The notes: generated by a model from the sequence alone, not told the origin. 64,000 bases of DNA from Thalia democratica (GCA_965202585.1 OZ241834.1:31062001-31126000); one strand, 5' to 3'; positions 31,601-58,600 are shown, counted from the first letter of the stretch. Made by a program: numbers and translations.

Positions 31601-34600
31601 TTAAAAATTTTACAGTTTCTTCTTTACTAAAAGTTTTATTTAATTTTCAGTTTATTGTTTTAAGTCATTTGATATAGATTTAAATAGCTTCCAGTTTTTA
31701 AAGTGTTACCTAAGTAATTAATAGTTTTGTATATGCTAGTATTTCTTGTTGTGTTTTATATATAAGATTCATCACTCAAAACTGTCGTGTCTGATTATAG
31801 AAAGTAGTTTCAGTTAGGATTTAGTATTTGTTAGATATTAATTAAATAAGGTAGGATATAATTATGATGGGTAGTACTAATAAGTTAAGTGTACCACAAT
31901 CAGTCACAACTTTACTACCAAATTGTCAACCTTTGCTAGCTGTTCTACTGATTATTAGATTAAAGTAATTTTTTTCAGTTTTTAAAAACCTCATTCTGAC
32001 TCAGGCTTGTTTATACTCACTCTTGCTAGTTTTATTGACTTTAACGGTGGCAACCCTGCTAGTTTGAAAATTTTTGGGAATTTTAGAAAATCTTGGACTG
32101 CCTCAGGCTAGTTTAGTTTTTTACAAAAACTCAGGCTAGTTTTCTTTTAGATTTTGAATGAGTTTGAGCTGATTCAGTTTTCAATGTTTTGTAACTTTCT
32201 AGTGTATTTTGTTCAAGAACTTGATTTCAGATTTTTAATTGTAAATAACACCTAAATTTGTAAACCTTATGGCTAGCTGTTCTACTTATTATTAGATTAA
32301 AGTTCTTTTTTTTTTCATTTTATAAAAACCTCATTCTGACTCAGGCTAGTTTATACTAATGATGTAGCGGACTCACTATCCGGGTCCGGGTCCGGCCGGA
32401 TATTGCCATTTTTGTCTGATATCCGGATCCGGCCGGACTCTAATTTGAAAAAATAGTCCGGATCCGGTTCCGGCCGGATTCTAATTTGAAAAAAAAGTCC
32501 GGATCCGGTTCCGGCCGGATTCTAATTTGAAAAAAAAGTCCGGGTCCGGTTCCGGCCGGATTCTAACTTGAAAGAAAAGTCCGGATCCGGGTCCGGCCGG
32601 ACCCAAAATTGTGGGTCCGGTACATCACTAGTTAAAACTTAAACTTTTAGACAAACACTGTAAAAAAGTATAAAAATTAAAGCTCATTTAGTTTACTATT
32701 AATTACCTCTTGTTGTCGGTGTTTTTAATGGTCTAAAAATATTAATCAAGTTTGAAAGTTTTAACTTTTAGAAAAACACTTTAAGAAACTCCTTTAAAAA
32801 TTACAAGTCACTTAATACACTATTTGAACAAAATTTTAAGGAACTCACCTCTTGTTGTCAGTGTTTTTTATTGTCGCTCGTTCCGAAATTTCGCCGTTCA
32901 CCTTCTTCCACTTGGCGATCGGTACCGGCTTGCCCCGGATGCCCACCTCCAGCCGGATCGTCTCGCCGGCCTCGTACTTCTCCCGCGGCTTCGTCTCGAA
33001 CGTCACCGTCGGGGCGGAGTTGGGGCTCGACAGCTCTTGGGCGTCGCATAGCGGAGAAAGAATTTCCGAGGGAAGACTCGCCTCTGACGTGCCGTGCTCG
33101 TTATGAGCTAATACTCGGAATCTGTAAGTAAAAGTGTGTCAACAAAGCTGCAATAGTCACCTTTGAGTTAATTTAACCGATGCAGTTGAGTTTTTATTTA
33201 AAAATTACTTAAACTCAGTGTGATAACAAGTTGAAACGCTTTACTGCTAAGCTTTATGGTGTATTTTGCAAAACAAAAAAGCTTTAAAATGTTAGATATG
33301 TTAGTAAAAACGTTACTGTTGTATAAAGCTGTTAAAGATTTTATTTAGCAGATTTTAGTTGTAATACAATTTATCTCCAAGATTTTTTGATTATAAGTAA
33401 AAGGTGAAAATGCATTTTAAAAACTGTTATCTTATGATATAAAGCAAATTTAAACAAATAATATTTCAGATAACTTTTGCTTAATATTTAAAATAAAAAC
33501 TTTATAAACTAAAATTTTATGTTTAACTTTCATTTTAAAAGCTACTACAACATAAAAATAAATATTAGCCTCACAAAAATAGCTTACTGAATTATAAAAA
33601 CAATAAAAAGTTTAAACAAAAGTAAAAAAACAAAAGTTTTATTTTAGAAGAAAAAACTATACTGATAAAAACGTTAATACATATTCTAAAACAACTTTTC
33701 AAACAAAGACTAAAACAATTAATACTATCAACTCTAGTGTACTAACTTGTATGAGCTGTTAGGATTCAATCCTTCAGCCGTGAATGTGTTTTCTTTCAAT
33801 TTGCTCTTGATCAGCTTAAAATCGCTGTCTGAATTTTCACTCATTTCAACTGAGTAGCTCTCAGTTGCTGGTCCTCCTTCAGTCCATGTTATCGTGATCG
33901 TTTCTTTCGTCGTTCGAACGATCTTCGGACTTGAAGGGGCCTTTGGAACACCTAAATTGTTGGTTTAGTAATATATCTATATAAAAGCAAATTATTTTAT
34001 CTTTTAAATTTTTTGTGAGTAATCAAAAATCGAAAAAATATATGTAAATTAAAATGTTAACAAAAAATTCCAACGGCTTTAAAATTTTGTTTATTTTGTA
34101 TCATAACTTGTAGTGAAATCAAAACTTTCAGACTATATCAATTTAAGCTCTTAATTTTTTATAGTTTAGTTTTTATAGACATTTATAATGAAAAATTAAT
34201 TAGTTGTAAAATAATACTCTACTAGTATTTCAGATTTCTAAACATTAAAAACAAAAAATTTTTTTTTACACAAAGTCAGTGAAAAGTGCTTGAAAAAACA
34301 AAAAGTGAAAACAATATCTTAATAAATTAGTTTACTTAGCAAGCATGCTCTACATTAACTAAACCTTTTGATTATTTTTCAAAACAAAACACTAACGTAT
34401 TTTAGGAACGGCAGAAACTTGTGCGGACTCTGTCGCGCTGATTTTCGTTTCTGCTCTGACTTGTTCCGCTTTTACTGCGGAAGCTGTTTCTTTAGCTTCG
34501 CTTTTTGTTTCTGTCGTTTGTTTCTGTGGTATCGGTTTCAAGTTTACGTTTATGTCAACCGATGATGCATCACTGCCGCGTTTCTGATGCACATGCTTCA

Positions 34601-40600: not shown

Positions 40601-43600
40601 AAAATACATTATGATACCATACCTAGATAGATAAGCTCGGAGTCATTTGTTTAAAAAAAAAAAATATTGTTACAATTAATTAATTAAACTTAAAGTAAAA
40701 TAGTTTAGAATATTTTCGCAAAAGGTGTTTTTATTAGCTTTTTTTACGAATGAAAGAACCACTAGAAGTCGCTAATTCAAAAGTTAAATTCAAACCAATG
40801 CAAAAAAAAGATAAAGTACTATTTATAGAAGAATGTAAGCAGGTTTGCTACAAAAAGTTATTGTAGTAGTTTTTAAATTATCCTCCCTATACAAAAAGTT
40901 TATCTTAAGACCAAACAAGAATAGTTCCAGATAGAAGTTTTGAAGCTTAAATGCTGCCTAACTGTATGCAACTTGAATCAACTTAAATTCAGATTAAAAG
41001 ATATAAACATCAAAGAGAAAAAAACATTGTCAAGAAAGAGAAAAAGTGTAGATCAAGGATAAATTCTTACACCAGATTCTTTTAACTTTACTAGAACAAA
41101 ATTTTGAACTAATATTTGCTTTGATTTCAGATTTTCATATTGTTCAACACCGAAAACTTTATGAAATATACAAGATATTGTAATGCAATTTAGAGAAAGT
41201 TTTATCAATATTATTGTGTATTTGTGATAAAATTACTTTAAAAAAAGAGTTTTTTGAATTGTGACGAATGACAACCAGATAGTTTAAGCAATATAATGAA
41301 CTTTTTTTTCTCATTTATTGTAAGTGAACTGGTAGTTATCTAATAATTAAAGCTTCATTTGGAGGTCTTATATCTATACCCGCTAATCATATAAAAAAAT
41401 ATCTAAACCTTCACCTTTCGACTGAAATACTATACTGAACTACAAAAGATTTTTAAAAAACTGACAACAAAAGTTACGTATAGTATGCAAAAAAAAAAGA
41501 AATCATAAGGAAAGTGCAAGATACAATGCAAGTGTTAAAAAGACATTTTAGCTTTAAACAGTAACAATGGCATTCTTTAAACTAAAAAAAAGTGAAATAG
41601 TGTGCAGAAAAATTATAAAGTTCTAATTTGTGCAGTTGTGCTTTCAATCGTGTCCACTTACGAGAAGCTTCCGAGGCGCTGAAGTCTTCTGACCCCTTTT
41701 CTTCTGCTTCTTCTGTTATTAAAATAATTTTTTAAAGTTTAATTGAGTTCTTTTTAACAACTTATGGATAAGAATCATTTTTAACAAATTTGTGGTTTGA
41801 TAAATTAGTTTATGAAATAGTTATTAGGAATAAATTTAAAATGAACTAACTCTTACTGCCATGGCTGTCAATAGGAAGTTGTTTTTGTTGCTGGTCTTCT
41901 ATCAAAACATCAGAAACAAGACACTGTTCAATATTCTCAGATTCTTTTTGAGACAAAGGTTCAAGTTTTATATCCGAAGATGTTTTCAAATCTTTATTAC
42001 TAGTGGGTTCATCAACTGCATTTTCTGCACTAGCATGACTTTTTTCATCATTTTGAGCCGGGATTGTACCCACAATTTTTTTAGAACTTTTCTTTCTTAG
42101 CACTTTTTTGTACCTTTTTTGTTTTGGCCTTTTCGCAGTATCTTCTGTTACTTCATTATTTTTTGATTTTTTTGAGTCATCAACTTTTTCAATTTCAGCT
42201 TTATCGGCAGGTGCTGTTTCTGAAACTATTTCGCCAGAACCAATAGGCTGCTTACTTTCAAAAGAGCCTTTATCACCCAAACCACAATTTTCTACCATGT
42301 CTAAATCAACTAGATCGCTATCAATTATATGTTCGCAATCTTTTATAAACACCGAGTTTGAAACGCTCCAATCGCTCAAACGGGTATCAGTTTGCGCCGC
42401 AACTCTGAACTGGTACTCGAAGCCGACCCGAAGGCCGCCGCATTTGACGCTCAACGAGTTCACTTTCTTGTTTATTCGGTACCACCTCGGTGAGTTGTTT
42501 TCTCTTTTTTCTATGAAGAAACACGTTTCATTGCTGTTTTCAATATGGTAAGCCCACTGTAGCTGTACGACGTTGTAGTTTGGTATTTGTTCAGCTAGAG
42601 TTATTTCTGGAATACTAGAAGTCGCGCTTCGTGTGGTTATTGCTTCAGAAGAAAGCGATGGACCAGAACCTACTTTGTTGCAGGCTTTCACTCTAAACAC
42701 GTACTCAGTACCCGGTTTCAAGTGTTCCACTTTGTAGAAAAGCTCTTTCACTCCGGACGTCACTGAAACTTTCAGCTTTCGTTTCCTGTCGACTTTTTCA
42801 ATGTCGTACCCTGAAATCGAACAGTTTCCTGAAAATTCCGGAGCTTCCCATCTCAGCTCGCAGCTTGTCTCTTTCACCTCTGAAACTTTTAAAACGCCAG
42901 AACATACAGACGGAGCAGTTAGAACCACAACTTTGACGTGCGCCTGGCAGCTACCTAACTCGTTTGTCGCACGGACGACGTAGACACCTTCGAGGTCCTG
43001 TTTAGCTTCGGAGAACCCAACAGAAACTTGGTTTCCCGTCCTAGTCTCCCTGAAATCACTTGGTTCGTTATTTTCCCGCGTCCAGTTTGTTATGGGGTAA
43101 GGGTGACCGGAAATGGTGGCCCTAAGATGGAACGGTTTCGACTCTTCGACTTCAATTTTTGGTGAGTCGATGACTATTTTTGGAATGGTTGGAAGTTTTG
43201 GTTGAATGAAGTTTTTGGACTGCCACAAAAATTCAGGCTCCGAGCCGGTTTCTCTGGTTATTTTGAATAAATAAAAGTGTTCTGGGTTTAAGTTTTCAAC
43301 GTTGTAAGTGTTGGACCGAGAACGGCCCGACTCGACCCAGTGTTCGTTGATGCGGTCCATATAAAAGAATACAAATTTGTCATTAGATTCGTCGGGGTTT
43401 TCAAACGTAATGTTCACCACACCGTCTCTGATGACTGCTAGTTTCGTGTCGGTGAACTCGTCATCTTCGTCTGAAGATGCTTGTATGTAGTCCACTGTTT
43501 CGCAACTTTCTCCCAACCCAATCTTGTTTGCAGCTGAAACTTTTAGCAAAAGCGGATATTTGTTAACCGGCACTGCGCAGTTAGTCAAAGCAGTTTGCTT

Positions 43601-46600
43601 CAAAATATTCCACTCGTTTTCTCCTTGAATTTTCGTCTCAACGAGGTACGACAAGACAGGCAGCCCACCGTTGAACGCTGGAGGGCTCCAAGAGAAAGTG
43701 CTCGTGTTGTTGTAAACAGGAGTGCAGCTCAAGTCAGAGCATTTTTCGGGGGCTGAGTACACGCTCACGTTCACGTGCTTTTCAGTCTTTCCGCAGCTGT
43801 TAGCCGCGATCAGCGAGTATTTTCCTGAATCGGAGACCCGGCAGTTGTCCTTCTTCAAAACGATGCAGTCATCAACGACTTCTCTCTCAAACTCGCTAAA
43901 GTCCAGCTCTTCATCACCAAACTTCCACGATATCTGCGGGTAAGGTTTCCCGCATATCTTCGACGTGATCGTCAAAACGTCGCCGACTTTGACAAAATCG
44001 TTCGTGCTTATTTGCACCACCGGCTTCTCAACGCTCTCATCGACCCTGACTTCCTCGCTCGCTTCACCCGCACCCATCTTGTTCACCGCGAAAACCCTGA
44101 AGTTGTACTTTTCGTCCTTGCTCAGATCCTTGACTTTGATCTTTCTCGCGGTGACCGGGTCCTCATTCACCGTCTTCCATTCTTCCTCGTCATCGCAAGT
44201 CGCTTTCTGCGCGTGGTATCCGCAAATCACGTCTCCCCCGTCCGAGTCCGGCTCGTCCCACTTCAGAGTGACCGAGGACGGGTTCCTGGTGGCCACGTAC
44301 AGATTTTTCGGCGGCCCCGGCGGCGAGCCACCCTGCTTCACTTCCACCAGCTTCGTCTCCTCCGACGGCTCGCTGCACCCGATCGCGTTGAAGCTCCTCA
44401 CCCTGAACTTGTACCTATCGCCCTTGCTCAGGTTGGCGACGCGGTAGTCGAAGCCGGGTATGGGTCGGGAGGTGACCGGGATCCAGTCTTCGTCCTTTTC
44501 GCTCCTGTACTCGATCGAGTAGCCGGTGATCCGCGACCCCCCGTTCACTTCTGGCTCCTCCCACTCGACGGTCACCGCGCTGTCGGTGACGCTTGATATC
44601 GTTGGTTTGTCGGGAGGGCAAGGCGAATCGAACATCAGTTTGACCGTGACGTCATCGGACTCCAGCCAATCGCCGCAACCCTCGCTATTTTCCGCCCTTA
44701 CCCTGAACCGGTACTTCCTGTCCGCCTCGAACCTGGACAGCTTGGCCTTGCAGCGCAACCCGTCTTTCGTGTTGACCGGCAGCATCCAGCGGTCTTGCGC
44801 CAGGTCCATGCGCTCGACGCAGTACCCCGTGATCTCGCTCCCGCCGTCGTCCTCGGGCGGGTTCCAGGTGACCAGCGCGCTGTGAGTGGTTATCTTGGAT
44901 ATTTTTAACGGCGCCACCGGTGGGCCAGGTCTGTCCATGACTTGCACTTTAATCGTGCACTCTGCGCTTCCCAGCTCGTTGACCGCTTTCACGTGGTACA
45001 TGCCCGAGTCGCTCCTCCCTGGGCTTTTGATGCTCATTGTGGTTTTGTCGCCGGTTGTTTTTGTTTTGTGCTTGCTGGGCTTGTTTGGCGCCGTCCACTC
45101 TATTAACGGTGTTGGGCTTCCATTGAACTTTGCTGAAAGTTTCAGAAACTTACCAATTTTTGCAAAGACTTCTTCTTTTTTAGTAAACAGCTGTGGAGGT
45201 TTGAAAACTCCGTCGTAAAATTCAGAGTCTTTATCCTCTTCTATATCTTCGTGGTCACTTTCAATTTCTTCAGTTTCAAATTCATCATCAGCTACAAAGT
45301 TTTCCACGCTTTCATTGTTATCATTCTTTATATTCTGTTCGACCTTTGAGCTACTTGATGCTTTAATTAAATCTGGATGTTGAGTTGATGCTCCTTTTCC
45401 AAACTTGTTCAGAGCTGCCACTCCAACGTAAATGCCATCATTGCCATCGAGCAAAAGCTCAAAACTTTGATTGTCAGTTTCACCTGCATCGTTGAACACA
45501 TCAGCGAAACGGCTTTTGACTGAAACAACGTAAGAAAGAGCTTCTACGTAACTTGCATCGTTTGGCGGATTCCAAGTTATTTTTGCTTTGTTTGCTTCTA
45601 CCTCAACTTGCAGGTTGCGACAAGCGCTTGGCAGCTTGCCTTTAACATTTACCTCCACGCTGTCCGTAACAGTGTCTAAATCATTAGTTGCAGCTGCTGA
45701 GTAAACTCCGCTGTTTTCAGTTGTGACGTCATAGATTGTTAGCTCAATAGCACAATCAGTTTCTTTTATTTCTACATTCTCACAGGGTTTTAGCTCAGCT
45801 TCGTTGCAGCGAAACTTCAACGTCGGCCGAGGTTGACCTCCCACCGAAGCTTTCACAACTAAACTGTCACCTTCGTATAAATCTTCGTTTTGCACTGACA
45901 GTTTCACGCTCGGTGCTTCCCCCGCAACGTTCACGTGCACCGGCGCGCTCGGCTCGCTCGCCCCCTCGAAGTTGCATGCCACCACCCTGAAGCTATAGCC
46001 CCTCCTAGTGTCCAAGTTGCTTATTTTCTTCTGGCACGTGACCACCGGCTCTTCTCCCACTTTCGCCCAATCGTCGCCGCTTTCAAGCCTTTTCTCGATA
46101 AAGTAGCACGTGATCGGGCTGCCGCCGTCGTTTAAAGGGGTTTCCCATGACAGAGACACCGAGCTGTTTTGTGACGTCATTTTTGCTCGCAAGTTCATTG
46201 GCGGGCTCGGAGCCGTGGTAGGGTTCAATAGGGTTAAAAAGTTGGTTGAATTTGAAAAATCGCTTTCCCCTGCCTCGTTAACAGCGGAAACTCGGAATGA
46301 GTACTCGTTTTCCGTGGACAAGTTGAACACTTTAAACTCATTTTCCTTGATTGGTTTCTCAGTTACACACTGCCATTGGTTATCACTGTTACTCAACTGA
46401 TATACTTTGTAACTAACGTAATCGTCATTTTGCAGATGGTTCCAACCTAGACATATAAACTCCGCGCTCACGTCTTTCACTGTAAGATCGTTCGGAGCTT
46501 CCGGTTTCTTCAAAATCCTTTCTATCAAAACGCTTTCAGATTCCAACGAATCGCTCGTGCCGTACTTGTTTTCAGCTAAAATGCGGAACGTGTACTTGCA

Positions 46601-49600
46601 GCCTTCCTCCAACCTGGAAACTTTGCACCTCGTCTTGCTGGCGTCCTTGATCGTGTACGCCAGCATCCACTTACCACTTTCTCCCTTGCGCTTCTGCACG
46701 TAATAACTGTGCACCGCGGAGCCTCCGTCATCACACGGAGCTTTCCACGACAACACCAGGCTGCTCTCGGTCATGTTGGAAACTTCCACCGGCCCTTCAG
46801 GCTTCGAAGGTCGGTCAAAAACTTCAACCAGCACCGAGTCTTCTGCCTGTCCGCAGTCGTTGGTGGCTGTCAGGGTGTACGAACCGCTGTCCTGTCTTGT
46901 CACGCTCTGAATCGTCAGGGTCGTCACGTCCTTGTAGTTTTTCACTGTGACGTTCGAACTGTTCTCTTTTTTAAAGCCCTCCCACTTGACTTTCGGTTTC
47001 GGAAAGCCGAACAGCTTCGCCGTGAGCCTTATCAAGCTTCCTGATTGCGCTGAAATGCCGCTTTTTGTTTTGGCGTTGAACTCAATGCGCGGAGGTACTT
47101 CCACTTCTTTTATGTTTGGGAGTTCTTTCGAAGGCTCCCTCGAAAGGACGCTTCTTTTTTTGTCGATCGGCGACGCTGAAGCGAGCGGTTTCAAACTTTC
47201 CGGGCTAAAACACACGGGTCTGAAGTCTTCTCCGTCGTCGAAGGAAGATCTAATTTTTACCTTTTTACTTTCGTTCGGCAAGCAAATAGTGCTTCTCAAA
47301 ATACTTTTGAGCTGCGCAATCACAACCGGCCTGCTTCTCCCGCACTCGTTTTCCGCTGTTATTTTGAAGGACGATTCTCTGACGTTCGGCTGCTTTTCAA
47401 AATTTACGTAGCAACCGCTCGTATTTTCCAACAGCCTCCAGCCCGGAGTGCCTTTCACTTTCTGCTCAACGACGTAGCTGAGAGGCAGGTTGCCCGAGCT
47501 TTCAGGAGCGCTCCAGGTCATCTTGTACTCGTTCTCGCCGCCCTCACTGCAAACCACGTCGTCCACTATGCCCGGTTTGTGCACGACCCTCACGTCGCAC
47601 TCGTCGCTCGCCTGGCCCGCCTTGTTGGTCACGATGAGCGAGTACTTGCCGTTGTCCCGCTGCTCGCACTGCTCCAGCGAGAAGCTGAACCTCTCCTTGG
47701 TGTGGTCCTGCTTCCACCTCTGCAAGCTGGTCATCGGCTCCTCGTTGAGGAAGAGGTAGAAGTCGGGTCTGGGCGTTCCGGTCACTTGCGCCTCTATCAC
47801 GATCTTCTCTCCCAGGTGCACTTGGCTCGGTGCCGACAGCTTCACGGTTGGAGCTTCCGCCAGCTGCTCGAGCATCACTTCCTTGCTCGGTTCGCTCTCT
47901 CCCGCGCTGTTCACCGCCTTCACGCGCAGCCTGCACCCATCAAGCTCTTCCAAGCTCAAGTCGAGCTCGGTTTCGGTGACTTTGTCGTCCAAGACGTTCC
48001 ACTTTTTGCTGCTTTCATTTTTGTACTGCACGACGTAGCCGGATATGCTGCAGTTGCCATCGTCAGTTGGCTCGGACCATTCAAGAGTGGCGGTGTTTTT
48101 ATCCTTTAGGATCAACGTGAGATCGGAAGGCGGACCGGGCGTCACGAAATTTCTCTTGATGCTCACTAACGAGGTGGGCTGAGACGGATCGCTCGTTCCT
48201 TTCCGGTTGACTGCGCGCACTCTAAACGAATACTCGTGGCTTCTTATCAGCCCCATCACCCTATACGTCGTCTCAACCACCGGCGTTATGGTCGACGTGT
48301 CCCAGTGGTCGTCTCCCTCCTCGATCTGCTCGATGACGTAACCAGTGACGTTGCTGTTCCCGTTGTGCTCGGGTTCGCTCCACTCCAATGAAGCCCAGCT
48401 GTCGCCAATCAGCGCGATGCTGAGGGATTGAGGCGCCGAAGGTACTTCAGTGTTGTCCCTCCGGAAGATCTTCTCCGACACGAGCCACTCAGATTCACCG
48501 TACTTGTTCTCGGCTCGCACTCTGAACTGGTGAACATTTTGTGGCGTGTTTATCTTTACCTCGCACGTCGTGTCCTTGCAATCTACCAAGCATTCTCTCC
48601 ACTCTAAATTATCTGAATCAAACTCTTCTACTTTGTATCTTAAAATCGGAGCGCCACCGTCCTCGTTGGGCTTGTGCCACGACAAGAAGGCGGACTCGCT
48701 GGTGAAGTTTTTGACGAGGAGCTGGCCGGAAGGCGCTGAGGGCAAGTCGAAAATTTTCAGAGAAATATCTTTCTTGCACTTTCCGTGGGAATTAGCTGCC
48801 ACAACGGTGTACTTACCTTCATCACTCCTGGCAGCGTTTTTTATCTCGTACGTCGTCAAACTGCCCTTGTTTTTAATGGTGATTCTCGTCTTGCTGTTCG
48901 GATCCTGGCCCGTCCAACTTACTTCCGGCTTCGGCGAGCCGCTGACGTGAGCTCGCAAACGAACTGTGGTTCCTGCTTTCGCCGTGAAGCATTCGTTGAC
49001 GATTTTCGAAGAAAGCTTGATGCTCGGCTTCTTGCCATTCGATAAATTGTCTTCGACAGACTCAGGGTCAGACTCGACAAAACTAGAAGTTCTGCTCAAT
49101 ACCGGATCTTGACCTGGAAGTTCGTTATCGGAAAAGCTCAGTTTTAGAGGATGAAAGTCGGGCAGCAGCGACATTTTTCTGATGATTCTCCTGTCGGGCA
49201 CGTAGCGGTCGTTTTCAACAAACTTGCCTAGGCCGAGGTCGTTTTCCGCTGCCACCCTGAACCTATACTGCTCGCCCCTTTCAAACGAAAATTCAAGGAA
49301 ATTTGATTGACATGTTCCAAACTGGGTCCAAACCTTCGACGACTTGGTGAGAACTTCGACGATGTAGTGGATTATGCTCATGCCTCCGTCGTCTTCCGGA
49401 CCCTTCCACTCGACTTTGCACGAGCTCATGCTCATATCGCTTGTTTTTACTTCCTTGCACTCGCCGGGCTTGCTTATCACGTTGACAAAGTTCTCGTCGC
49501 TACCCTCGCCCGCCTTGTTCCTGGCCACCAGCGAGTAAACGCCCGAATCCTTCCTCTCGCAAGACTCGAGTCTCAAAGAGACCCGGCTCCCGTCGGAGGA

Positions 49601-52600
49601 AGTTTCTTCCGACCATCTGTTCCACCATTCCAACTCCTCGTTGTTCTTGTACCACGTCAGCTCGGGGTAGGGACTTCCCTCGACCGTAGCGCTGACGACC
49701 AGCTGGTCGCCCGTGACGACCGACGGCTTGCAGCGCATGGTGACGGCGGGCGGGCGGACGGTGTCCATGGCAACGACGACCTGGCTGTAATCGCCCTTGC
49801 CAGCGTTGCTGCACGCCCGCACCCTCAGCTCGTACTTTTTGTCGTCGTAAACGTCGTTCATTTTTATTCTTTCGTCGGCGAAGGCCTTCGTGTTGACGGC
49901 TTCCCATTTTTCCTCGCCTTGCTCTCTTCTCTCGACAAAGTACCCGATGACCGGATACTCCGAGTTTGATTCCGGAGACTCCCAATTAAGAACGATGAGA
50001 AAAGGGTCCCTCGTGACCACTCGGAGGTTGGTCGGAGCCCGAGGAATTGCGACGTTTCTGCTTATTGTGACGTAATCTGTTGGTTGCGAAGGCTCGCTTT
50101 CTCCGACCTTGTTTAAAGACTTCAACCGGAAACAATATTGATCTCCGTTTACGAGACCAATCACTTTGTGCTGAGTGTCGACAATTTTGTCTAGGTACAC
50201 GGGAACCCAGGTTTCGTTTGACCCGGTCTGCGATTTTTCCACAATGTACCCAGTGACTTCAGAACTAAAAAAATCCGTCGGCTGCTCCCACATTAGGTGA
50301 ACGCCGTTGTCGAAAACAGCCTTCACCTGAATATTGCACGGAGCATCGGGCACCGTCGACAAAGTCACAGGGACTAAACTACTCGTCAACCAGTCGCTTT
50401 CTCCGTGGCTGTTGACGGCTTTGACCCTGAACTTGTAAGTTTGATTCAGAACCAGACCGGACAACAAACACTCAGATTTCAATCCGTCCACAGTTTCTTT
50501 TTGCGCGCTCCAACATTCGTCAACGGCCAGTCGCGATTCCACTTTGTACTTTGCAATCGCCAGGCCGCCGTCGTCCTTCGTTGGCGTCCACGTGAGCAGC
50601 GCGCTGTCCTTCCGCACGTTGATCAGGCTTACCGGCGGCTGCGGCTTTCCCGGTTTGTCCACAACGTTGACGCTGGCAATCGCGATCGCCTTACCCGCTT
50701 GGTTCTTGGCGGTGATCATGTAAATGTCCGTGTCGCTCCTTTGAGCGTTCGTCACCACGAAATCGGCCACGCCTCCGTTCAGGATTATCCTCAGCCTGTC
50801 CTTGTTGGCGTCGGTGCTTTGCGCGGTGAACTTTATCTCCGGTTCGGGGAACCCCTCCACCACGGCGCTGAACTTTATTTCCTGCCCGACGTAACCGTCG
50901 ATTCCCGCCTCCACGTACTCGAGGAAGCGTATGGTCGGCTTCTCACCGACGAAATCGTCTTCTTCATCATCTTCTTCTTGTGATTCTTCTTTTCGTAGGT
51001 TTGTTTCTTCTGCTTGTTGTTCCGTTTCTTCTTCTTCTTTAATGCTTTCTAGAACGTTTTCAGACAAAGCTTTTTCCAGGTCTTTTGAAACTGGAGCTTT
51101 GTCGTTAGTTTCGTCTGAAGCAGGCGACAATTTGCCAACATCGTTACTTTCCTCTGTTTCAATCTCTTCATCTACCATCTCTGGGATATCTTCAAAGAAG
51201 ACTGTAGGTATGTTGTTTTCTGACTCCATTTCAACTTCTTCTTCAATGTCTGACAACTTTTCTGATGATTCGCTCGAACTTTCCGTTTCGGACGGCACTT
51301 TCTGAGGTTCTTCGTCAATATTTTCAACTGTTGTTGGATCTTCTAAAGTGTCTACATGTATGCATGCAGGCTCACTGGATCCTGAACTGTTGATGCTGTA
51401 CAGTGACACGTTGTACTTTGTGTCAGGACTGAGGTTTTCTACTTCAAAAGAGTTTTCTTCGATGATGAACTCTTTTGGCTTGTCTTCATCGTCCGGCTTT
51501 AAGTTCTCCCTGAAAATTTATAGTTTGTTTTACTGGCAAAAAGAATACAAAAGCCTGAGTATAGAAAACAACTTTGCATTAAATAACTGTTTTGATGGTA
51601 CTTACAAGAAAAAATTTATGAACTTTTTCTTTACTTACAAAATAACTTTGTAGTGGGTGACTTCCTCTTCAGAACTTGGCTCGTTCCATTTCACATGGAT
51701 CATTTCAGTTGTCACGGATTTCAAATGCAAGTTTTCCGGCTTGCTAGGTTTTTCTATTAAAATAAATATAATTTTTTAAAAGTAAATGCATAAAAGTATT
51801 TAAGGCTATCTTTTGATTTTTTGAATTTATAACCAATTAAAACTTTAAAAGGTTAAGCTTACATTAAGTTGATATACAAAACTAAATTTTTAATAAAGTT
51901 ATCCCCATAAAGTTTTTACCATCTTATAGCATTTAAAACGTAAGCATCTCAAAAAAATTAAGTTAAGTGTTCCCTTTTAAAAATGAAAAGTTACGTATAT
52001 ACTTTTAGTCATTGAGATATGTAAATGGACTTAATTAAGTTTCTGAAACTTTTATCACATAAAAAATTCAGAAATCGAATACACTAACTTGGTTTCAGGT
52101 AATTAATTTCTGTTTCGTCTGAAGGCCTTCCGATTCCAACCTCGTTTTCAGCACTAACGCGAAACTTGTAACCGACCTTGTGGTTGAGCCGGTTTGTCTG
52201 TTTGAAAGTATCAAACATCAAATAGTTTTTTAATTTTTCAATAAAAATTTTGAGCTTTGTTTGAAATCGACAATTACTTTTTTAAAAGTTGTTTAAAAAT
52301 AAAAAACTTTGATTCAAAAACTTTCACCTGCTAAGTTACTCGATTTTAACACATAAAGAAAGAAACAAGTCAAGGCAACCTTTAAAAAATAAGTTTCTGA
52401 TCTGATTAAAAGGTTAAGTAAGCAACAAAAAGTAAAAGCTTTAAAGGTGGTTAAATAAAGCAGCTTTTACCGTGAAACTCAAAACGTCAGGCGGTTTCTC
52501 CCCGACGCGCTTCCACAGCATCGTGACGTCATCGTGCTGCTCTATGAGGTACGCCACCACGCCGCAGCTCTGTGACGTCATCGCTTCCGGCTCGTCCCAC

Positions 52601-55600
52601 GTCATCGACATGCGGCTGTCGTCGTCGGTTGCCTGGTAACGGAGGTTTAGTGGGGGGTTGGGCGCCTTCACGACGGACCTGACGGGCACCGCCTCGCTCA
52701 TGACATAATCAGAAGATCCTGATTGGTTGAACGCGCTCAAGCGGAACTCGTAGGTCCTACCTTCCTTCAGCGACTTGGCCGTGTAGCGCAAAATTTTGAT
52801 GTTCTGTTGATTGATCAATTTAAATTTATATTTGAACTATTAAAAAACAAGTTTATTTGTAAAAAAAATTGTTTTTATTTGTTAAAAATGTTCTTTTTTA
52901 TAATAACAATTTTATAATCTTTAAAGATAAAACAAAAATTTCAAAACAATGTGTTTTAAATGGAAACTCGCCTTGCTGCATGTCTTCCACGACTTCTTCC
53001 CGTGTTCCCGCTTCTCAACCACGTATCCTTCCACCAGCGCGTTCTCACCACTGGAGGGAGTTTCCCCCCACATCAGCGTCACCGACGACTTGGTCGTCTT
53101 GACGACGATGAAGTTGACGGGGGGCGACGGTGACTGGATAAGCGGCTTGCACGTGACTGTTTCGCTGACGTCACTGGCAGGGGAATCCCCCGCCTCGTTT
53201 GTTGCAACTATTCTGTATGTTAATAAATTATGAAGATTAGTGTCATGTTGTAGATATAGAACTAAAACTTATTTCAAGTTTATTTTTACTAAGAAACGCG
53301 TTTCGTTGCATTTTAAGAAATTAAATGGAGTTTTATAAGGCTTCTAATAATGTTTGATTGTTTTAAAAATAATTTAAGGTTAACACACTTAATTTTAAAT
53401 AGTTTTTTGTAATAAAAAATTGCTCACCTGAACTGGTACTGCCTTTTGACGGGAATGAGACTGTCGACGACTTGCTCGCACCCGCAAACGTCCGACTTGC
53501 ACGTTGAAAACTTCTTCTTCCAATCAGAACTAGTTGCTGACTTGTGCCGCATCTCTACCTTGTACTTCACCTGCTGGTCAGCTGACTGCTTCCAAGTTAG
53601 ACGCACAGACGTGTTTGCAATCTGTTTATTGGTTGTTTTTGTTTATACAAAAGCTTAAGCGTTTAAACATTTGTAAAGCTTAAGCTCATTTTTTATAAAA
53701 GTAGATGTTTTTTTCTACAGTTTTAGAAACTTCTTAGTTATTTGTGTCATTTTTTTCGAATTTAAATGTATTGCTTGATTGTTAGAACACTGACATTAGT
53801 AATTTTAGGTGTGTCCGGTTTTTCCGGAATTTCGACGGGGTCCTTGGTTGTGTATCCGTCGCTTGGATCACTCGGCTCGCTTGTTCCAGTTTCGTTCTCG
53901 CTGGAAACTCTGCACAAAAATACAATTAACATAACGAAACAAAATATTAAAAACTTTCAAACTATTTTTTGTTAAATCTGAGGTTTACCTCTACCTCCTG
54001 AAGCTGTAACAAAAAAAAGCATAATAATTACTGTAAAAGTTATTATTATGTTGTTGAACTTTAGTCCATTGAAAGACAGATATTTTTTCAAATCACCTGA
54101 AACAGTAACTTTTGCCTTCTTGGAGATCGGTCGCCACGTACATGAGCTGATGCGGGCCGACTTGAGCCAGGCCCTTCCAACTCTTCCTCTTCTCCTTCAC
54201 TTCCACTTTGTAGCAGATTATGGGGAGGCCCCCGGTGTCCAGCGGCTTGTTCCACTTCACCCTGATCTCGCGCTTGCTCATGACGTCACAGCGGGGCTTG
54301 GACGGCGGCATGGGCCGGCTGAACGGGTTCTCGACGATGATTGGTTCGCTGGACGCCCACGGGCCTGAACCCAACTCGTTGTTTGCTTGAACCTGAGAGT
54401 TTTTTTTTTAAGTAATTATGTTTTTGTTTATTATCGAAATAGCTGAACTGTAGCTATGTTATTTTTTATAGTAGAGGCTGAAAAGCATAAGGTAAATGAA
54501 AAATAAATTTTAGAAATTGGTATAAAAACTTTCTAAAGCTATCAAAAAAAATTAAAAAAGATGATAACTTTAAAAGCAAAGTAAAATAAATAAACTCTTT
54601 CGTAAGCTACTTTAAAAAAAATCGATATTATTTTTAATAACTTTCATAGAAACAAAACGCCAACCTGTATCTGGTACGTTTCTCCTTCCGAGAGGCCGGT
54701 CACCTTGTACCACAGCTGGTCGGCCGATATGGACTCGAAGCTGGTCGTCTCCCACTCGACCCGGCCCTGGTTGCCCCTGCCGACCAACGCCGTCTCCTTC
54801 TTCACTCTGACGTCGTAGCTGCGGAGGGGAAGTCCCCCCGTGTCCGGCTGCGACCACGAAACGACGCACGACGAGTCGCTGACGTCACTGACATCTGTGT
54901 GCGACGTAATAATGACAAACCGATTAGCACTTAAGTTAATTGAAAGTTGTTTTTTCAGTAAACTACTTTAAGAATACACAAAGTTTCTCAAATGTTAATG
55001 TTTCAACTAGATTTATTGATATAGCAATTAATATTTAAACAGATTCAGTAAATATTTTGAAAAATTTTAGGCAAAACTTAAACTTTTTAACTAAACACTT
55101 AAATAAAAAGACTGATTTGAATAAAAATTAATAATTTTATGACTAGTACTATGGTTTAATCAGAATCAAGATTAACTTGAAATTAAAAAAACATGTACAT
55201 AAATAACTTTTCGTTATTATAACATACAATCAAATATAATAGGCTTACAACTAAACAGAATTAAAGTTTTCTTTAATAACAAAACTGTCTATCTATTATT
55301 TAACATTGAGATCAAAGTTAAAATTAATTAATTACTTATATTGTCCGGTCTGGCCGGTTTGTCGAATACGTTGACGAAGCAATTAGCCGTGGCCACACCG
55401 AATTCGTTTTCAGCTTTTATTTGGTAATTGCCAAACCTACTTCTTCTAATCTGTTTAATCAAAATAGAGCTTTAAGTTTTATTCAAGTCCAGTGTAGACG
55501 TTTTGGATATTGAGTTATCAACGTTTCAAATGTCTGATTAATTTTAATGTAAAATGGAAAATATACTATTTTTAACATACTTTCAAGTAAATTTTTGTAA

Positions 55601-58600
55601 CTGTAAACAATCTTACTTCTATATTTCAAAATAAAATTAGCCGAACAATTTTCTAGTTCAAAACAACAAAGATTAAACACGTTAGATTGTAGTCTACAGA
55701 GACAAAGTAAACGCATCAAAGTAAAAAAATATACAGGTTATAGCGAGCAATTATCAGAAATATAAGCATTATTAAACTAACAGAGCTTTGACAAAAGATC
55801 AAATCTTTAGATAAAGTGCATTGAGTTAAACTTGTGACTTTTATGTGACAACCAGCCAACTTACGTGCTTGATGTGCAAATCGAAACTTCTTTCTTCCAA
55901 ATCTTCAACAAAGTCGTACTTCAAAGATGTATCCCGCAGTTCGACCGAGTTCAACGACCACGTGACTTCGGGAAGCGGGTCGCCTGTGACGCAAGTTTCT
56001 ATTATGACGTCATCACCGCTGTTCGCCTCAATTCCTCCTTCTTGCAAGTTTCCCCCGCGAAATGTTATTCGTGGTCCGTCTGACCAAACAAGTATAAAGA
56101 TGATATTTACAAACTTTTCTAGTAAGTTAAAACTAAAAAGGCTGTAATTAAATTTTGAAACAAGTTTATTAATGAACAAATTTCAGAAGTAATAAACTAT
56201 TGATTGTTTTAAATAAAAGTTTTTTTTATAAAACTACCTTTGTTGTTTCTCGTCACAATGAGGTCGCTGCTTCGACTCGGTTGACTGAGTCCCACCGAGT
56301 TGAGCGCCCTCACGCGGAACTTGTACTGTTTGTTGGTGAGGAGATCCTCTGCGGTGTAGCTGGTCGCTTGGTGGGGTAAGACGTTGCACGGAGCGTATTT
56401 GGCCTCCGAGTGTTCGTCGATGCTTTTGCACAGCATCTGCTCGATCATGTATCCTGCGAAAAAACGTTGCTTCAGAGCCAGTATAAGACAATGCATGGAT
56501 TATAATTAATAGCAAAGTGGAATCATGATCTTTCATTTCATTTGTACGATAGCAGTTTAAACTTTTTAAGGCTTGTTATCTTATAATATTTTACAGTTTC
56601 CAACTTTAAAACTTTACAAAATGTTAACAATCTTATGTTTTTTTTGTACTAACTTACTACTGTGAAAACATTAACCTGTTACTTTAAGCGTAGTTTTTTT
56701 AAGTAATGTCATAGTTAAACTCGTTTAAAAAAAAGAGTCATGTTGCTTTTAATGCTAAACAATGAAACCTTTTACGTGCAAACCTGTGATTGGAGCACCG
56801 CCGTCCGAACCAGGCGTCAACCACGACAACTGAACCGAAACGTCGGTCACGTTGCTATGCGACAGTGACGTGGGTGGAGAGGGCACGGTGGCTCGTTTCC
56901 TGGCAACCACCGAGTGATCGAGCTCCACGGGAACACCGGCTCCTGATTGGTTGAAGCAAGTGACGCGGAACCGGTAAGTTTCTCCTTCCTGCATGCTGGT
57001 CACGTGACAGAAATTTTTGTTGGATTTTACGCGATCCACCTTTGAAGTTGTGTTGATCAAAAAAACTAAGCAGCATAAAATAAGAGAGGCTGATAAAATT
57101 TAAGTACTTACATAAATAAAAGCTTTTTATAATAATAAGATAAACGCATGAGGTTGTTTTTTTTTTTGCACACAGTATATGAACAACGAACTTTTCAAAC
57201 AGTAAGCTTTTTAAACTAAGTATTGTTGGAGTTGTTTTTAGATTCAGTTTTCTAAACATTAAAAAAAAAATCTATTTTTAGAATAAATGTAGAAAGTATT
57301 AAGTTGTGTTAAATTTTAACTTCAGAATTAAAACAAAAATTTTATAAAATGCATATTTATTGATAGAAAAATTGTCTAACAATTATTTAATATTAATATT
57401 TGTGCATTAAAGCTTTTTAAAACCCTTTTAATAAGTTTTTCATGTGACTTTTTTTAACTTGATTTGGAATTAGAAACAATGATAATTTAAGCTAAACAAC
57501 AACAACTAATTAACTCACTTTTAAATCACAAATTAATTAAATTGTGTAAATATTAAAATGTACATTAAACAAAAAATAATTCTTAAACTTTAAAATAAAA
57601 ACGAAATGACAAAGTATACTTTTGTTATAATTCAAGGTAAAATTATTTATTTGAATAAAAAAAGAAATTGTTTAAAAAAAAAAATGAATACAACTAGTTT
57701 TTAGTTTTAGTACCTGCGTTAAAAAATCCTAAATACTAGAAGGTTTATTTTATATATAACTAACTGCCTAAAGTAATTATTGAGCTTTCAATATTATATA
57801 TCTTTGAAAATCTGCTCAAAATCTTTGATGATTTCAAACAAAAAACCTCTAACTAAAAGTGTGTAAAAAAAGATATTTCTATGACCAGGAACACATTTTC
57901 GTTTGCTTTAATTGCAATTTTCCGAACGTAAATGGTCTAATAAACATATGCGGTCAACAGCAGCAGCAATAAAAACGAAAGAGACAAAAAAAGTAAAAAA
58001 AAGTTTTACCTCGATCCAGCCGTCGCCCGCTTGGAACTCCACCGAGTATCCGTCTATGACGTCACAGTCGTCGATCAAAGGCCGCTTCCACGCGAGCTTG
58101 CAGCTGGTGGCGGTGACGTCATCCGCCGTTACGTCACTGACGACGCTTGAGGGCGCGCCTGAGAGCGAAAATAGGTCAAGTTCAAAAATTTTGTTGTGAC
58201 TTTGATAGTTTGTTTTATATTAGTAGCACATATATTTCAAGTTGTTTTGACTTTTATTGTGCAAGTTGTTCATTTTACATGTTTTTTTTACGTACAAAAA
58301 CCTTTAAGAAAAAGTTTTGCTGAATGTTTTATGAAAACAAAAAGCAAAGTAAAATACATTGAAACAATAATGCTCTACCAGTATAGAAAAAATATAAATA
58401 CAAAAAAAGATCTCTAATCAAGATAGTATAAACACTTTGTGTAAAAAAACTAACACAAAATGCTGACGTCGAAAGAGCAGGAGCTCTGTCCGATTTGGTT
58501 TTTCGCCACCAGCCGGTAGGTTCCTTCGTGTTCGCTTTTCTTGCAGCCCTCCACCACCAGCGTGACGAGGTCGTCTGTGACGTAACAGTTGACGTTTTTG

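Follow-up and report, generated by a model that had tools for sequence, protein, structure and literature searches.

The I-band PEVK and N2B unique sequences of titin (connectin) are disordered spring segments, phosphorylated in known cases; such segments lie in the I-band, are composed chiefly of P, E, V and K, and contain repeats. The A-band part is regarded as a rigid, domain-by-domain template of the thick filament. In vertebrates, the D-zone consists of six Ig-(FnIII)2-Ig-(FnIII)3 super-repeats, A1-A42 (PMC10665226, PMC7427331). All six units are intact in human titin (PMC10665226), in agreement with what an initial annotation of the locus studied here had stated for vertebrates. Within a D-zone unit, the Fn3 pair has sub-types A and C, in that order, and the triple has A, B and C (PMC10665226). 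Each A-band domain accounts for about 4 nm, a D-zone unit spans two myosin crown levels, and the A/I junction of vertebrate titin has 14 domains (PMC7427331).

We analyzed a window of 64,000 nucleotides from the tunicate Thalia democratica (GCA_965202585.1 OZ241834.1:31062001-31126000), which contains a lineage-specific variant of this well-known D-zone design in a fast-evolving group. In the D-zone of this animal, position 3 of the super-repeat has probably decayed, as a derived state, to a translated disordered spacer of about 50-70 residues in the three tip-ward units and to a divergent Fn3 in the unit on the C-zone side. The whole region lies in one giant exon of about 9.25 kb on the minus strand (approximately 42256-51509). 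A single open frame at 41846-51409 encodes 3187 aa (3223 aa from stop to stop), and the acceptor is ttttcag/G at 51510/51509. HMM mapping of the exon gave an acidic spacer, Ig-Fn-Fn-Fn, and then four Ig-Fn-X-Ig-Fn-Fn-Fn units:

42256..51509, minus strand: giant titin exon in which the entire region lies (acceptor, candidate donor, open frame, Pfam fn3 and I-set matches)
50930..51337, minus strand: acidic spacer that follows a six-Fn3 run (aa 25-160, net charge -40)
49790..50899, minus strand: leading Ig-Fn-Fn-Fn, its Fn3s typed A, B and C in order (HMM map)
47891..49723, minus strand: unit 1, Ig, Fn3 (type A), L1, Ig, three Fn3 (HMM map, Fn3 typing)
45953..47824, minus strand: unit 2, Ig, Fn3 (type A, long branch), L2, Ig, three Fn3 (HMM map, Fn3 typing, AlphaFold)
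44063..45883, minus strand: unit 3, Ig, Fn3 (type A, longest branch among the recognised domains), L3, Ig, three Fn3 (HMM map, Fn3 typing, AlphaFold)
42371..43996, minus strand: unit 4 within the giant exon, Ig, Fn3, divergent Fn3, Ig, Fn3, Fn3 (HMM map, AlphaFold)

The four units begin at the Ig domains at aa 563, 1196, 1843 and 2472, with periods of 633, 647 and 629 aa (1899, 1941 and 1887 nt). The order read by the initial annotation, an acidic spacer and Ig-Fn-Fn-Fn followed by four units of about 1.9-2.0 kb, was thus recovered by the HMM map, with periods of 1.89-1.94 kb. No domain was found in the 136-aa acidic spacer by Pfam or by a search with our own HMMs, and its coding stretch was stop-free in 5e-5 of shuffles. 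The leading Ig-Fn-Fn-Fn resembles the latter half of a D-zone unit. Across the linkers, independent public runs from two studies gave the same sequence, with no indels.

The exon is flanked by two further arrays of Ig and Fn3 domains:

51371..63422, minus strand: upstream small exons, Ig-Fn3-Ig-Fn2-Ig-Fn6, 14 domains (six-frame HMM matches joined by profile coordinates)
6251..32973, minus strand: beginning of the C-zone, with intact 11-domain Ig-Fn2-Ig-Fn3-Ig-Fn3 super-repeats, in small exons first and then in a giant exon (HMM map)

The upstream array, ending in the six-Fn3 run, would correspond to the vertebrate 14-domain A/I-junction pattern. The position of the giant exon between this pattern and the 11-domain repeats that start at 32973 identifies it as the D-zone of tunicate titin, in the register that the initial annotation had proposed. 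That register was upheld by the A/I-like order upstream, the C-zone downstream, the type-A Fn3s and colinearity with a pufferfish titin. The Fn3 ahead of each linker was of type A, the kind found first after an Ig, and the triples were ordered A-B-C; the type-C member of the pair was absent in units 1-3. Exon residues 456-3012 aligned colinearly with residues 24-2769 of a Takifugu D-zone fragment (829 bits) with the architecture F-(IFFIFFF)x4 and a folded Fn3 at the third position. The Thalia region resembles the vertebrate D-zone in its place, in its seven-position unit, in the order of those Fn3 sub-types that could be typed and in its colinearity with the pufferfish fragment. It differs in having four units and a leading Ig-Fn-Fn-Fn instead of six units, in the acidic spacer that parts the region from the six-Fn3 run, and in domains that evolve faster than those of Thalia's own C-zone. 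It also departs from tandem units of seven folded domains, since units 1-3 each have six plus a disordered third position, and the third domain of unit 4 is barely recognisable.

According to the initial annotation, a disordered linker replaced the third domain in all four units. Three of these linkers were located where claimed, with core limits set at an AlphaFold pLDDT below 50; the fourth proved to be a divergent Fn3. The three cores, of 48-67 aa (about 50-70 residues), are the following:

49040..49186, minus strand: L1, disordered core (aa 742-790, net charge -5, RKMS motif, pLDDT 30-40)
47108..47308, minus strand: L2, disordered core (aa 1368-1434, net charge +5, KKRS motif, pLDDT 30-34)
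45209..45352, minus strand: L3, disordered acidic core (aa 2020-2067, net charge -17, pLDDT 28-35)

The domains flanking them had pLDDT values of 85-95. In the AlphaFold models, a single 4-residue helix was the only secondary structure in L1, and none was predicted in L2 and L3. No Fn3 remnant was detected in L1-L3 by Pfam, by our own Fn3 profiles or by profile comparison, even at permissive thresholds. The position-3 slots of units 1-3 measure 74-92 aa, against 125 aa in the C-zone, where the spacing from Fn2 to Ig4 is constant across the four super-repeats encoded by giant exon 6251-17638. These slots are therefore too short for an Fn3, which needs about 90-100 residues, so that L1-L3 have neither the profile similarity nor the room for this fold. 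L1-L3 are thus predicted to be intrinsically disordered segments at position 3 of the super-repeat, that is, in place of the second Fn3 of the Ig-Fn-Fn half. They are single-copy in the 802-Mb genome and, as the initial annotation had noted, unrelated to one another (local-alignment z <= 2 against shuffles).

The fourth segment, taken as a disordered linker at 43200-43490, was rejected as such and resolved into two parts:

43220..43444, minus strand: very divergent Fn3 at position 3 of unit 4 (Pfam, own profile, hhalign, AlphaFold)
43451..43477, minus strand: nine-residue acidic insertion before this Fn3, the sole part of the supposed fourth linker with pLDDT below 50

It matched Pfam fn3 (PF00041) with an E value of 0.014 and 16.1 bits, under the gathering cut-off of 25, and our own Fn3 profile with an E value of 2.8e-5. 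By hhalign, the segment aligned over 65 columns (P 0.0017), and its core F/W-x-x-P, Y, W, L and Y-x-F positions fell in register. AlphaFold predicted seven strands, as in the seven-strand Fn3 sandwich, with pLDDT 64-86; its alignment held homologues with an Fn3 at these positions, which could favour such a fold, and the same bias yielded no fold for L1-L3. The position-3 slot of unit 4 is 118 aa long against the constant 125 aa of the C-zone. The segment grouped with non-first Fn3s and could not be typed further (type A 7.5 bits, type B 13.1 bits, type C 8.2 bits). By profile and by model, it keeps the Fn3 fold as a badly worn copy, and folding as a divergent Fn3 was the very outcome that the initial annotation had named as counting against a linker.

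The linkers might instead be cryptic introns or exitrons, removed from some or all mRNAs to leave six-domain Ig-Fn-Ig-Fn-Fn-Fn units. L3 has an intron-like composition (GC 0.34, GC3 0.26), in-frame GT..AG pairs are present in every linker, and retention in mature mRNA is something we infer, the runs used carrying no RNA label. However, all four stretches stay in frame and were stop-free in only 3.6%, 0.85%, 0.44% and 0.13% of shuffles, the 0.44% being that of L3 despite its low GC3; the product is about 2e-9 if the tests are independent. GC3 was 0.49-0.54 for L1, L2 and the fourth segment (0.54 for L1) versus a GC of 0.21-0.32 in introns. No convincing internal splice sites were found in the linkers, the best candidates matching the donor consensus at 4-5 of 6 positions and having weak pyrimidine tracts. 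Among the linker polymorphisms listed, a small and partial sample drawn from the 40 variable places listed out of 361, 8 of 13 were synonymous, compared with 21-29% expected (P 0.002-0.014), and there were no indels. L2 was spanned whole and gap-free by contigs from three runs, and no run contained a joint; in one small run of high depth (contigs totalling 47 Mb, depth 40-140), possibly RNA-derived, the contigs were unbroken through L2. The open frame, intermediate GC3, poor splice sites and mostly synonymous polymorphism thus make cryptic introns very improbable, and we infer that L1-L3 are translated parts of the mRNA.

We then compared the region with other chordate titins. The top-scoring protein in a representative search was XP_066264227.1, a titin-like protein from the amphioxus Branchiostoma lanceolatum. 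It likewise starts with Ig-Fn-Fn-Fn and continues with seven-domain and then 11-domain units, but its five seven-domain units are all folded, with no gaps of more than 45 aa. Because amphioxus and pufferfish titins have a folded Fn3 at the third position, its replacement in the tunicate is read as a derived, lineage-specific state. Sequence searches found no tunicate ortholog of this titin. A Ciona savignyi protein labelled 'Titin' (H2YFD0) was rejected as an orthologue, since it is of the (Ig-Fn-Fn)n type and has no 7/11-domain super-repeats. Twitchin/projectin-type proteins with this architecture share the Ig and Fn3 module families and thick-filament association with the Thalia protein, but they have a three-domain repeat and lack both the super-repeats and periodic linkers.

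The same super-repeat position is affected in all cases, and units 1-3 clustered apart from amphioxus and vertebrate units (support 99/92), as would follow from a single loss of the third domain in one ancestral unit and subsequent duplication of that unit. This history is possible but doubtful. The tunicate units are on the longest branches, where long-branch attraction is likely; the three linkers lack mutual similarity; and unit 4 still has an Fn3 at the third position. Moreover, at least one D-zone unit pairs amphioxus with pufferfish (97/97), so that several units predate the chordate split.

With respect to regulation, the basic motifs quoted by the initial annotation are present in L1 and L2, and L3 is acidic as stated, but the sites called PKA-type are only loose matches. 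The exon contains seven [RK][RK]x[ST] motifs, two in L1 and one in L2, and not a single RRx[ST], the PKA/PKG consensus, along its entire length. The linkers could have been selected as flexible, kinase-tunable joints that alter the build of the thick-filament tip or the anchoring of titin: they were retained rather than deleted, recur at one super-repeat position and stay open with mostly synonymous listed polymorphism, and L1 and L2 hold three of the seven loose motifs in 4.6% of the sequence. Nevertheless, such adaptive hinges are improbable. The exon lacks strict sites, the motif enrichment is explained by a basic, Ser-rich composition, and the decaying Fn3 of unit 4 reads as ongoing loss, not design. 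L3 is purely acidic, and the absence of a common motif or sequence among the three linkers is unexpected for a shared regulatory module. L1-L3 resemble PEVK and N2B springs in being non-domain, charged and predicted-disordered segments between titin Ig and Fn3 modules. Unlike these springs, they lie in the thick-filament-bound part, are short (48-67 aa), have no repeats and recur periodically at one super-repeat position. They were rejected as PEVK/N2B-type segments because of their A-band location, a P+E+V+K content of 0.29-0.38 and the lack of mutual similarity.

In the explanation that we favour, decay of position 3, constraint on one super-repeat position would have been relaxed in the tunicate D-zone, the part of titin that lies along the thick filament's distal third, and the domain would have decayed into a spacer rather than being deleted. 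By geometry, a flexible chain of the linker length could span the ~4 nm slot of one domain, which would let the remaining six domains hold register on the myosin lattice at two crown levels per unit. Slot length drops from the 125 aa of the C-zone to 118 aa in unit 4 and 74-92 aa in units 1-3, which may speculatively be read as decay growing tip-ward. As a further speculation, the acidic spacer may occupy the place of an expected whole Ig-Fn-Fn. The Thalia D-zone could then serve as a natural experiment on how strict the template is at the filament tip: normal thick filaments would mean that the tip can do without the second Fn3 of the Ig-Fn-Fn half, and a tip that differs would indicate the role of this domain. 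It would also present domain-to-disorder decay at different stages inside one protein. It is unlikely, in our view, that the position-3 spacers are conserved across tunicates and functional, either as regulated joints or because the template tolerates one flexible tether per seven domains. Under that conserved-spacer reading, there might also be a tip-ward gradient of domain loss, connected with an altered structure of the tip or with the division of titin between two polypeptides.

Finally, we examined the end of the exon and the seventh domain of unit 4:

41849..42358, minus strand: sequence without a domain that follows domain six of unit 4 (34 aa to the candidate donor and a 135-codon read-through tail to the stop)
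33747..33951, minus strand: exon for the first two thirds of an Fn3 (Fn3 profile positions 3-65; acceptor tttag/GT, phase 1)

A candidate phase-1 donor, A/GTAAGC, places the exon end at 42256, and the phase of the acceptor at 33951 is the same. It is plausible from these sequences that the exon at 33747-33951 carries the seventh domain of unit 4. Past the candidate donor, the frame stays open until the stop at 41846. None of 20000 shuffles of this 135-codon read-through tail was free of stops, and an ATTAAA lies about 100 nt beyond its stop.

The window encodes the A-band part of the titin (connectin) gene on its minus strand. A single open frame runs through the large exon from 51409 to a stop at 41846 (-), corresponding to 3187 aa (3223 aa from stop to stop), and Pfam found many fn3 and I-set domains in it. 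The 5' boundary of the exon, an acceptor ttttcag|G at 51510/51509 (-), falls within an Fn3. Every domain was placed with Fn3 and Ig profiles made from the exon's own sequence, which gave the following map.

Start of the exon (-): end of an Fn3
aa 25-160, nt 50930-51337 (-): acidic non-domain spacer, net charge -40
After the acidic spacer (-): leading Ig-Fn-Fn-Fn
Starts at aa 563, 1196, 1843 and 2472 (-): four Ig-Fn-X-Ig-Fn-Fn-Fn units
49040-49186 (-): L1, the X segment of unit 1
47108-47308 (-): L2, the X segment of unit 2
45209-45352 (-): L3, the X segment of unit 3
43220-43444 (-): fourth segment, the X of unit 4

The unit periods were 1899, 1941, and 1887 nt, and unit 4 had just two Fn3s behind its second Ig inside the exon. 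The map bore out the initial annotation both in the order of the domains, Ig-Fn-Fn-Fn and then four units with a period of ~1.9-2.0 kb, and in the positions of all four X segments.

The zone to which these units belong was examined through their surroundings and their Fn3 types. Upstream, six-frame profile matches joined by profile coordinates gave small exons at 51371-63422 (-) with the order Ig-Fn3-Ig-Fn2-Ig-Fn6, 14 domains with six Fn3 last. This pattern matches that of the vertebrate A/I junction, as deduced in full from statements in PMC7427331, and the junction seems to have been kept domain for domain in Thalia democratica. Downstream, from 32973 (-), regular Ig-Fn2-Ig-Fn3-Ig-Fn3 units of the C-zone follow, on small exons and then on a giant exon (6251-17638). 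Residues 456-3012 of the D-zone exon were colinear with residues 24-2769 of a Takifugu titin fragment (829 bits), which reads Fn-(Ig-Fn2-Ig-Fn3)x4 and then C-zone-like repeats. The top match in a library of 1.8 billion proteins, the amphioxus titin-like protein XP_066264227.1, has Ig-Fn3, five intact seven-domain units, and then 11-domain units. In a tree of all Fn3s of the exon and of the C-zone exon, the "first after Ig" class stood apart from the others, and the Fn3 preceding each X belonged to it. These classes agree with the typing of human titin Fn3s, A-C in a pair and A-B-C in a triple (PMC10665226). Therefore, the register holds, and what the tunicate units lack is the second of the two Fn3s in the Ig-Fn-Fn half. 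The D-zone register proposed at the outset was thus upheld by the flanking patterns, the Takifugu colinearity, and the Fn3 classes. Position and colinearity are those of a D-zone, and so is the typing for the Fn3s preceding X and those of the triples; three of the four units lack seven folded domains, and the copies do not number six. In the second C-zone unit of the giant exon, the last Fn3 (10883-11200, -) was matched by two hits that overlap (aa 2147-2209 and aa 2200-2252 in that open reading frame), which suggests an internal insertion or a local duplication.

We then examined the X segments with AlphaFold, using one long construct of aa 650-1530 and a second of aa 1929-2830. Their alignments, of 42 rows each, combined the tunicate's own units with amphioxus, vertebrate, and twitchin segments that have a true Fn3 at X. 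The flanking Ig and Fn3 domains reached pLDDT values of 85-95; L1 (aa 742-790), L2 (aa 1368-1434), and L3 (aa 2020-2067) stayed at 28-40, almost without secondary structure. No Fn3 remnant was found in L1-L3 by Pfam (E up to 10), by hhalign, or by our own profiles, both general and type-specific, run without filters. From the end of the preceding Fn3 to the start of the next Ig, the slot measured 79, 92, and 74 aa in units 1, 2, and 3, versus 125 aa in each of the four C-zone units on the giant exon, and is therefore too small for a complete Fn3. L1-L3 are thus predicted to be disordered linkers, as first described. That they are mutually unrelated was also confirmed, since their similarity to one another did not exceed that of shuffles. 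An origin from repeats, transposons, or other genes was rejected because each linker matched itself alone in the 802-Mb genome (six frames, E up to 10). Nor are they PEVK-like, with a P+E+V+K fraction of just 0.29-0.38.

The fourth segment behaved differently. Its slot measured 118 aa. Pfam fn3 gave 16.1 bits (E 0.014), under the cut-off of 25; our own type-specific Fn3 profile matched it over positions 8-75 of 92 (E 2.8e-5), and hhalign gave an in-register alignment of 65 columns (P 0.0017) that kept the core residues F/W-x-x-P, Y, W, L, and Y-x-F. AlphaFold predicted seven strands with pLDDT values of 64-86; values below 50 were limited to a 9-residue acidic stretch (aa 2645-2653) preceding the strands. 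The true Fn3s in the alignment could push the model toward an Fn3, and L1-L3, which remained unfolded under the same kind of alignment, served as the internal control. Profile, hhalign, and structure prediction together with this control identify the segment as a predicted, very divergent Fn3, so the claim of four linkers fails at the fourth, under the refuting condition named with that claim, a linker predicted to fold as a divergent Fn3. Its scores were too low to separate type B from type C.

The linkers could also be cryptic introns or assembly errors. By chance, the four segments, in order, would be free of in-frame stops in 3.6%, 0.85%, 0.44%, and 0.13% of composition-preserving shuffles, and their other two frames held 3-14 stops each. 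L1, L2, and the fourth segment had a GC3 of 0.49-0.54, which lies between domain GC3 (0.66) and intron GC (0.21-0.32); L3 was lower, at 0.26, and so were the acidic spacer and 3' tail. None of the in-frame GT..AG pairs in the segments combined a good donor with a pyrimidine tract. Among the 40 best-supported variable places listed, 8 of 13 in linkers were synonymous versus 21-29% expected (P 0.002-0.014), as were 15 of 27 in domains. Frame, GC3, splice sites, and polymorphism are, at the level of sequence, consistent with the linkers being translated. Four runs, not on record as RNA, covered the stretch as contigs of even depth in which neither joints nor indels were seen. One run had 47 Mb of contigs with a depth of 40-140 on the exon, and its contigs passed straight through L2; an RNA origin would suit so small and deep a run, whose library type is not on record. 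An assembly artefact was ruled out by runs from two studies with two organism labels. Over the 6 kb of 43300-49299, the four runs together showed 361 variable places and haplotype contigs 2-7% apart, with zero indels despite this high polymorphism, disordered linkers included.

Comparison with relatives gives the direction of the change. At every X-equivalent position, a folded Fn3 is present in both the amphioxus protein and the pufferfish fragment, and all six units of the human D-zone are described as intact (PMC10665226), which makes the tunicate state a derived one. Within the window, the replacement was present in D-zone units and absent from all C-zone units. In a tree of units, one amphioxus unit paired with one pufferfish unit (97/97), a pairing that suggests that several units are older than the chordate split. 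Two histories are compatible with this tree, a loss in one unit before its amplification and independent decay of the units: units 1-3 cluster (99/92), as a single loss would have it, but they do so on the longest branches, unit 4, whose branch is longer still, retains a residual Fn3, and the linkers are unrelated. Parallel, progressive decay fits these last two features somewhat better. The Fn3s preceding L3 (45389-45607, -) and L2 (47330-47551, -) scored 36.7 and 45.4 bits versus ~65-80 for their neighbours, with branch lengths of 2.3 and 1.7, respectively; both were folded confidently by AlphaFold. Erosion thus reaches beyond the third position. Together with these divergent Fn3s, the slot gradient from the C-zone through unit 4 to units 1-3 and the 136-aa acidic spacer, which may occupy the place of an Ig-Fn-Fn half ahead of the leading Ig-Fn-Fn-Fn, suggest that erosion may rise toward the filament tip.

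No close tunicate orthologue was found with aa 555-1530 against a representative library, where matches had ~30% identity and no HMMER match crossed a linker; BLASTP gave long gapped alignments over the linkers at ~25-27% identity. Word-indexed searches found no close relatives of a 241-aa Fn-L1-Ig piece, of a 438-aa piece around L2, or of the entire exon with its region 556-1530. Ciona savignyi "Titin" (UniProt H2YFD0, P0157) was rejected as an orthologue since it is twitchin/projectin-like, with (Ig-Fn-Fn)x10 and then a kinase-proximal pattern; its database name is misleading. A literature phrase search on titin/connectin of ascidian, Ciona, and tunicate had no matches, and no account of periodic disordered D-zone replacements was found in the literature covered, which did not extend to the Ciona connectin paper (Hanashima et al. 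2012, Methods 56:18, cited in PMC12198301). An earlier description of such a feature, for example in that paper, may exist.

A disordered chain of 48-67 residues would easily span one 4-nm slot, as estimated from polymer dimensions, so the other six domains of a unit could hold their places on the myosin lattice. In vertebrate titin, each domain takes up ~4 nm of filament, and two levels of myosin crowns match one D-zone unit (PMC7427331). One position may have decayed, tolerated, into a spacer, with weak purifying selection maintaining an open frame and an approximate length. Such tolerated decay is the most likely reading, and a purpose-built hinge is less likely. The exon has seven [RK][RK]x[ST] motifs, of which two lie in L1, one in L2, and none in L3, and no RRx[ST]; the "PKA-type sites" reported in the linkers hold in this loose form for L1 and L2. 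The observation of periodic linkers was partly confirmed, and its interpretation partly supported, for the D-zone register but not for the proposed hinges.

The last Fn3 of unit 4 had been proposed to lie in a separate exon, and a candidate donor, A|GTAAGC, would end the D-zone exon at 42256 (-) in phase 1. The exon at 33747-33951 (-) encodes the first two thirds of an Fn3, and its acceptor shares phase 1, which makes a displaced seventh domain plausible; it would follow 34 more non-domain residues. Past the donor, 135 further open codons (41849-42255, -) continue to the stop at 41846, AT-rich with a GC3 of 0.21 and stop-free in 0 of 20000 shuffles. They encode a mixed acidic and basic tail, with ATTAAA ~100 nt past the stop, and from these features the tail seems to be a genuine alternative end of the coding sequence. 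If the front half of titin does end here as its own message, the region would be the C-terminal anchor of that half instead of belonging to a continuous ruler, and relaxed constraint would be easier to explain. The large intron also holds an 899-aa ATG-initiated open reading frame (34392-37091, -) for which Pfam gave no match up to E 10. A 52-nt mini-exon candidate at 41661-41712 (-) has a canonical acceptor (aacag|) and donor (|gtaagt) and encodes an acidic peptide. Its end phase does not directly match the acceptor at 33951, so the stretch from 41661 to 33951 probably contains more small exons or alternative paths.
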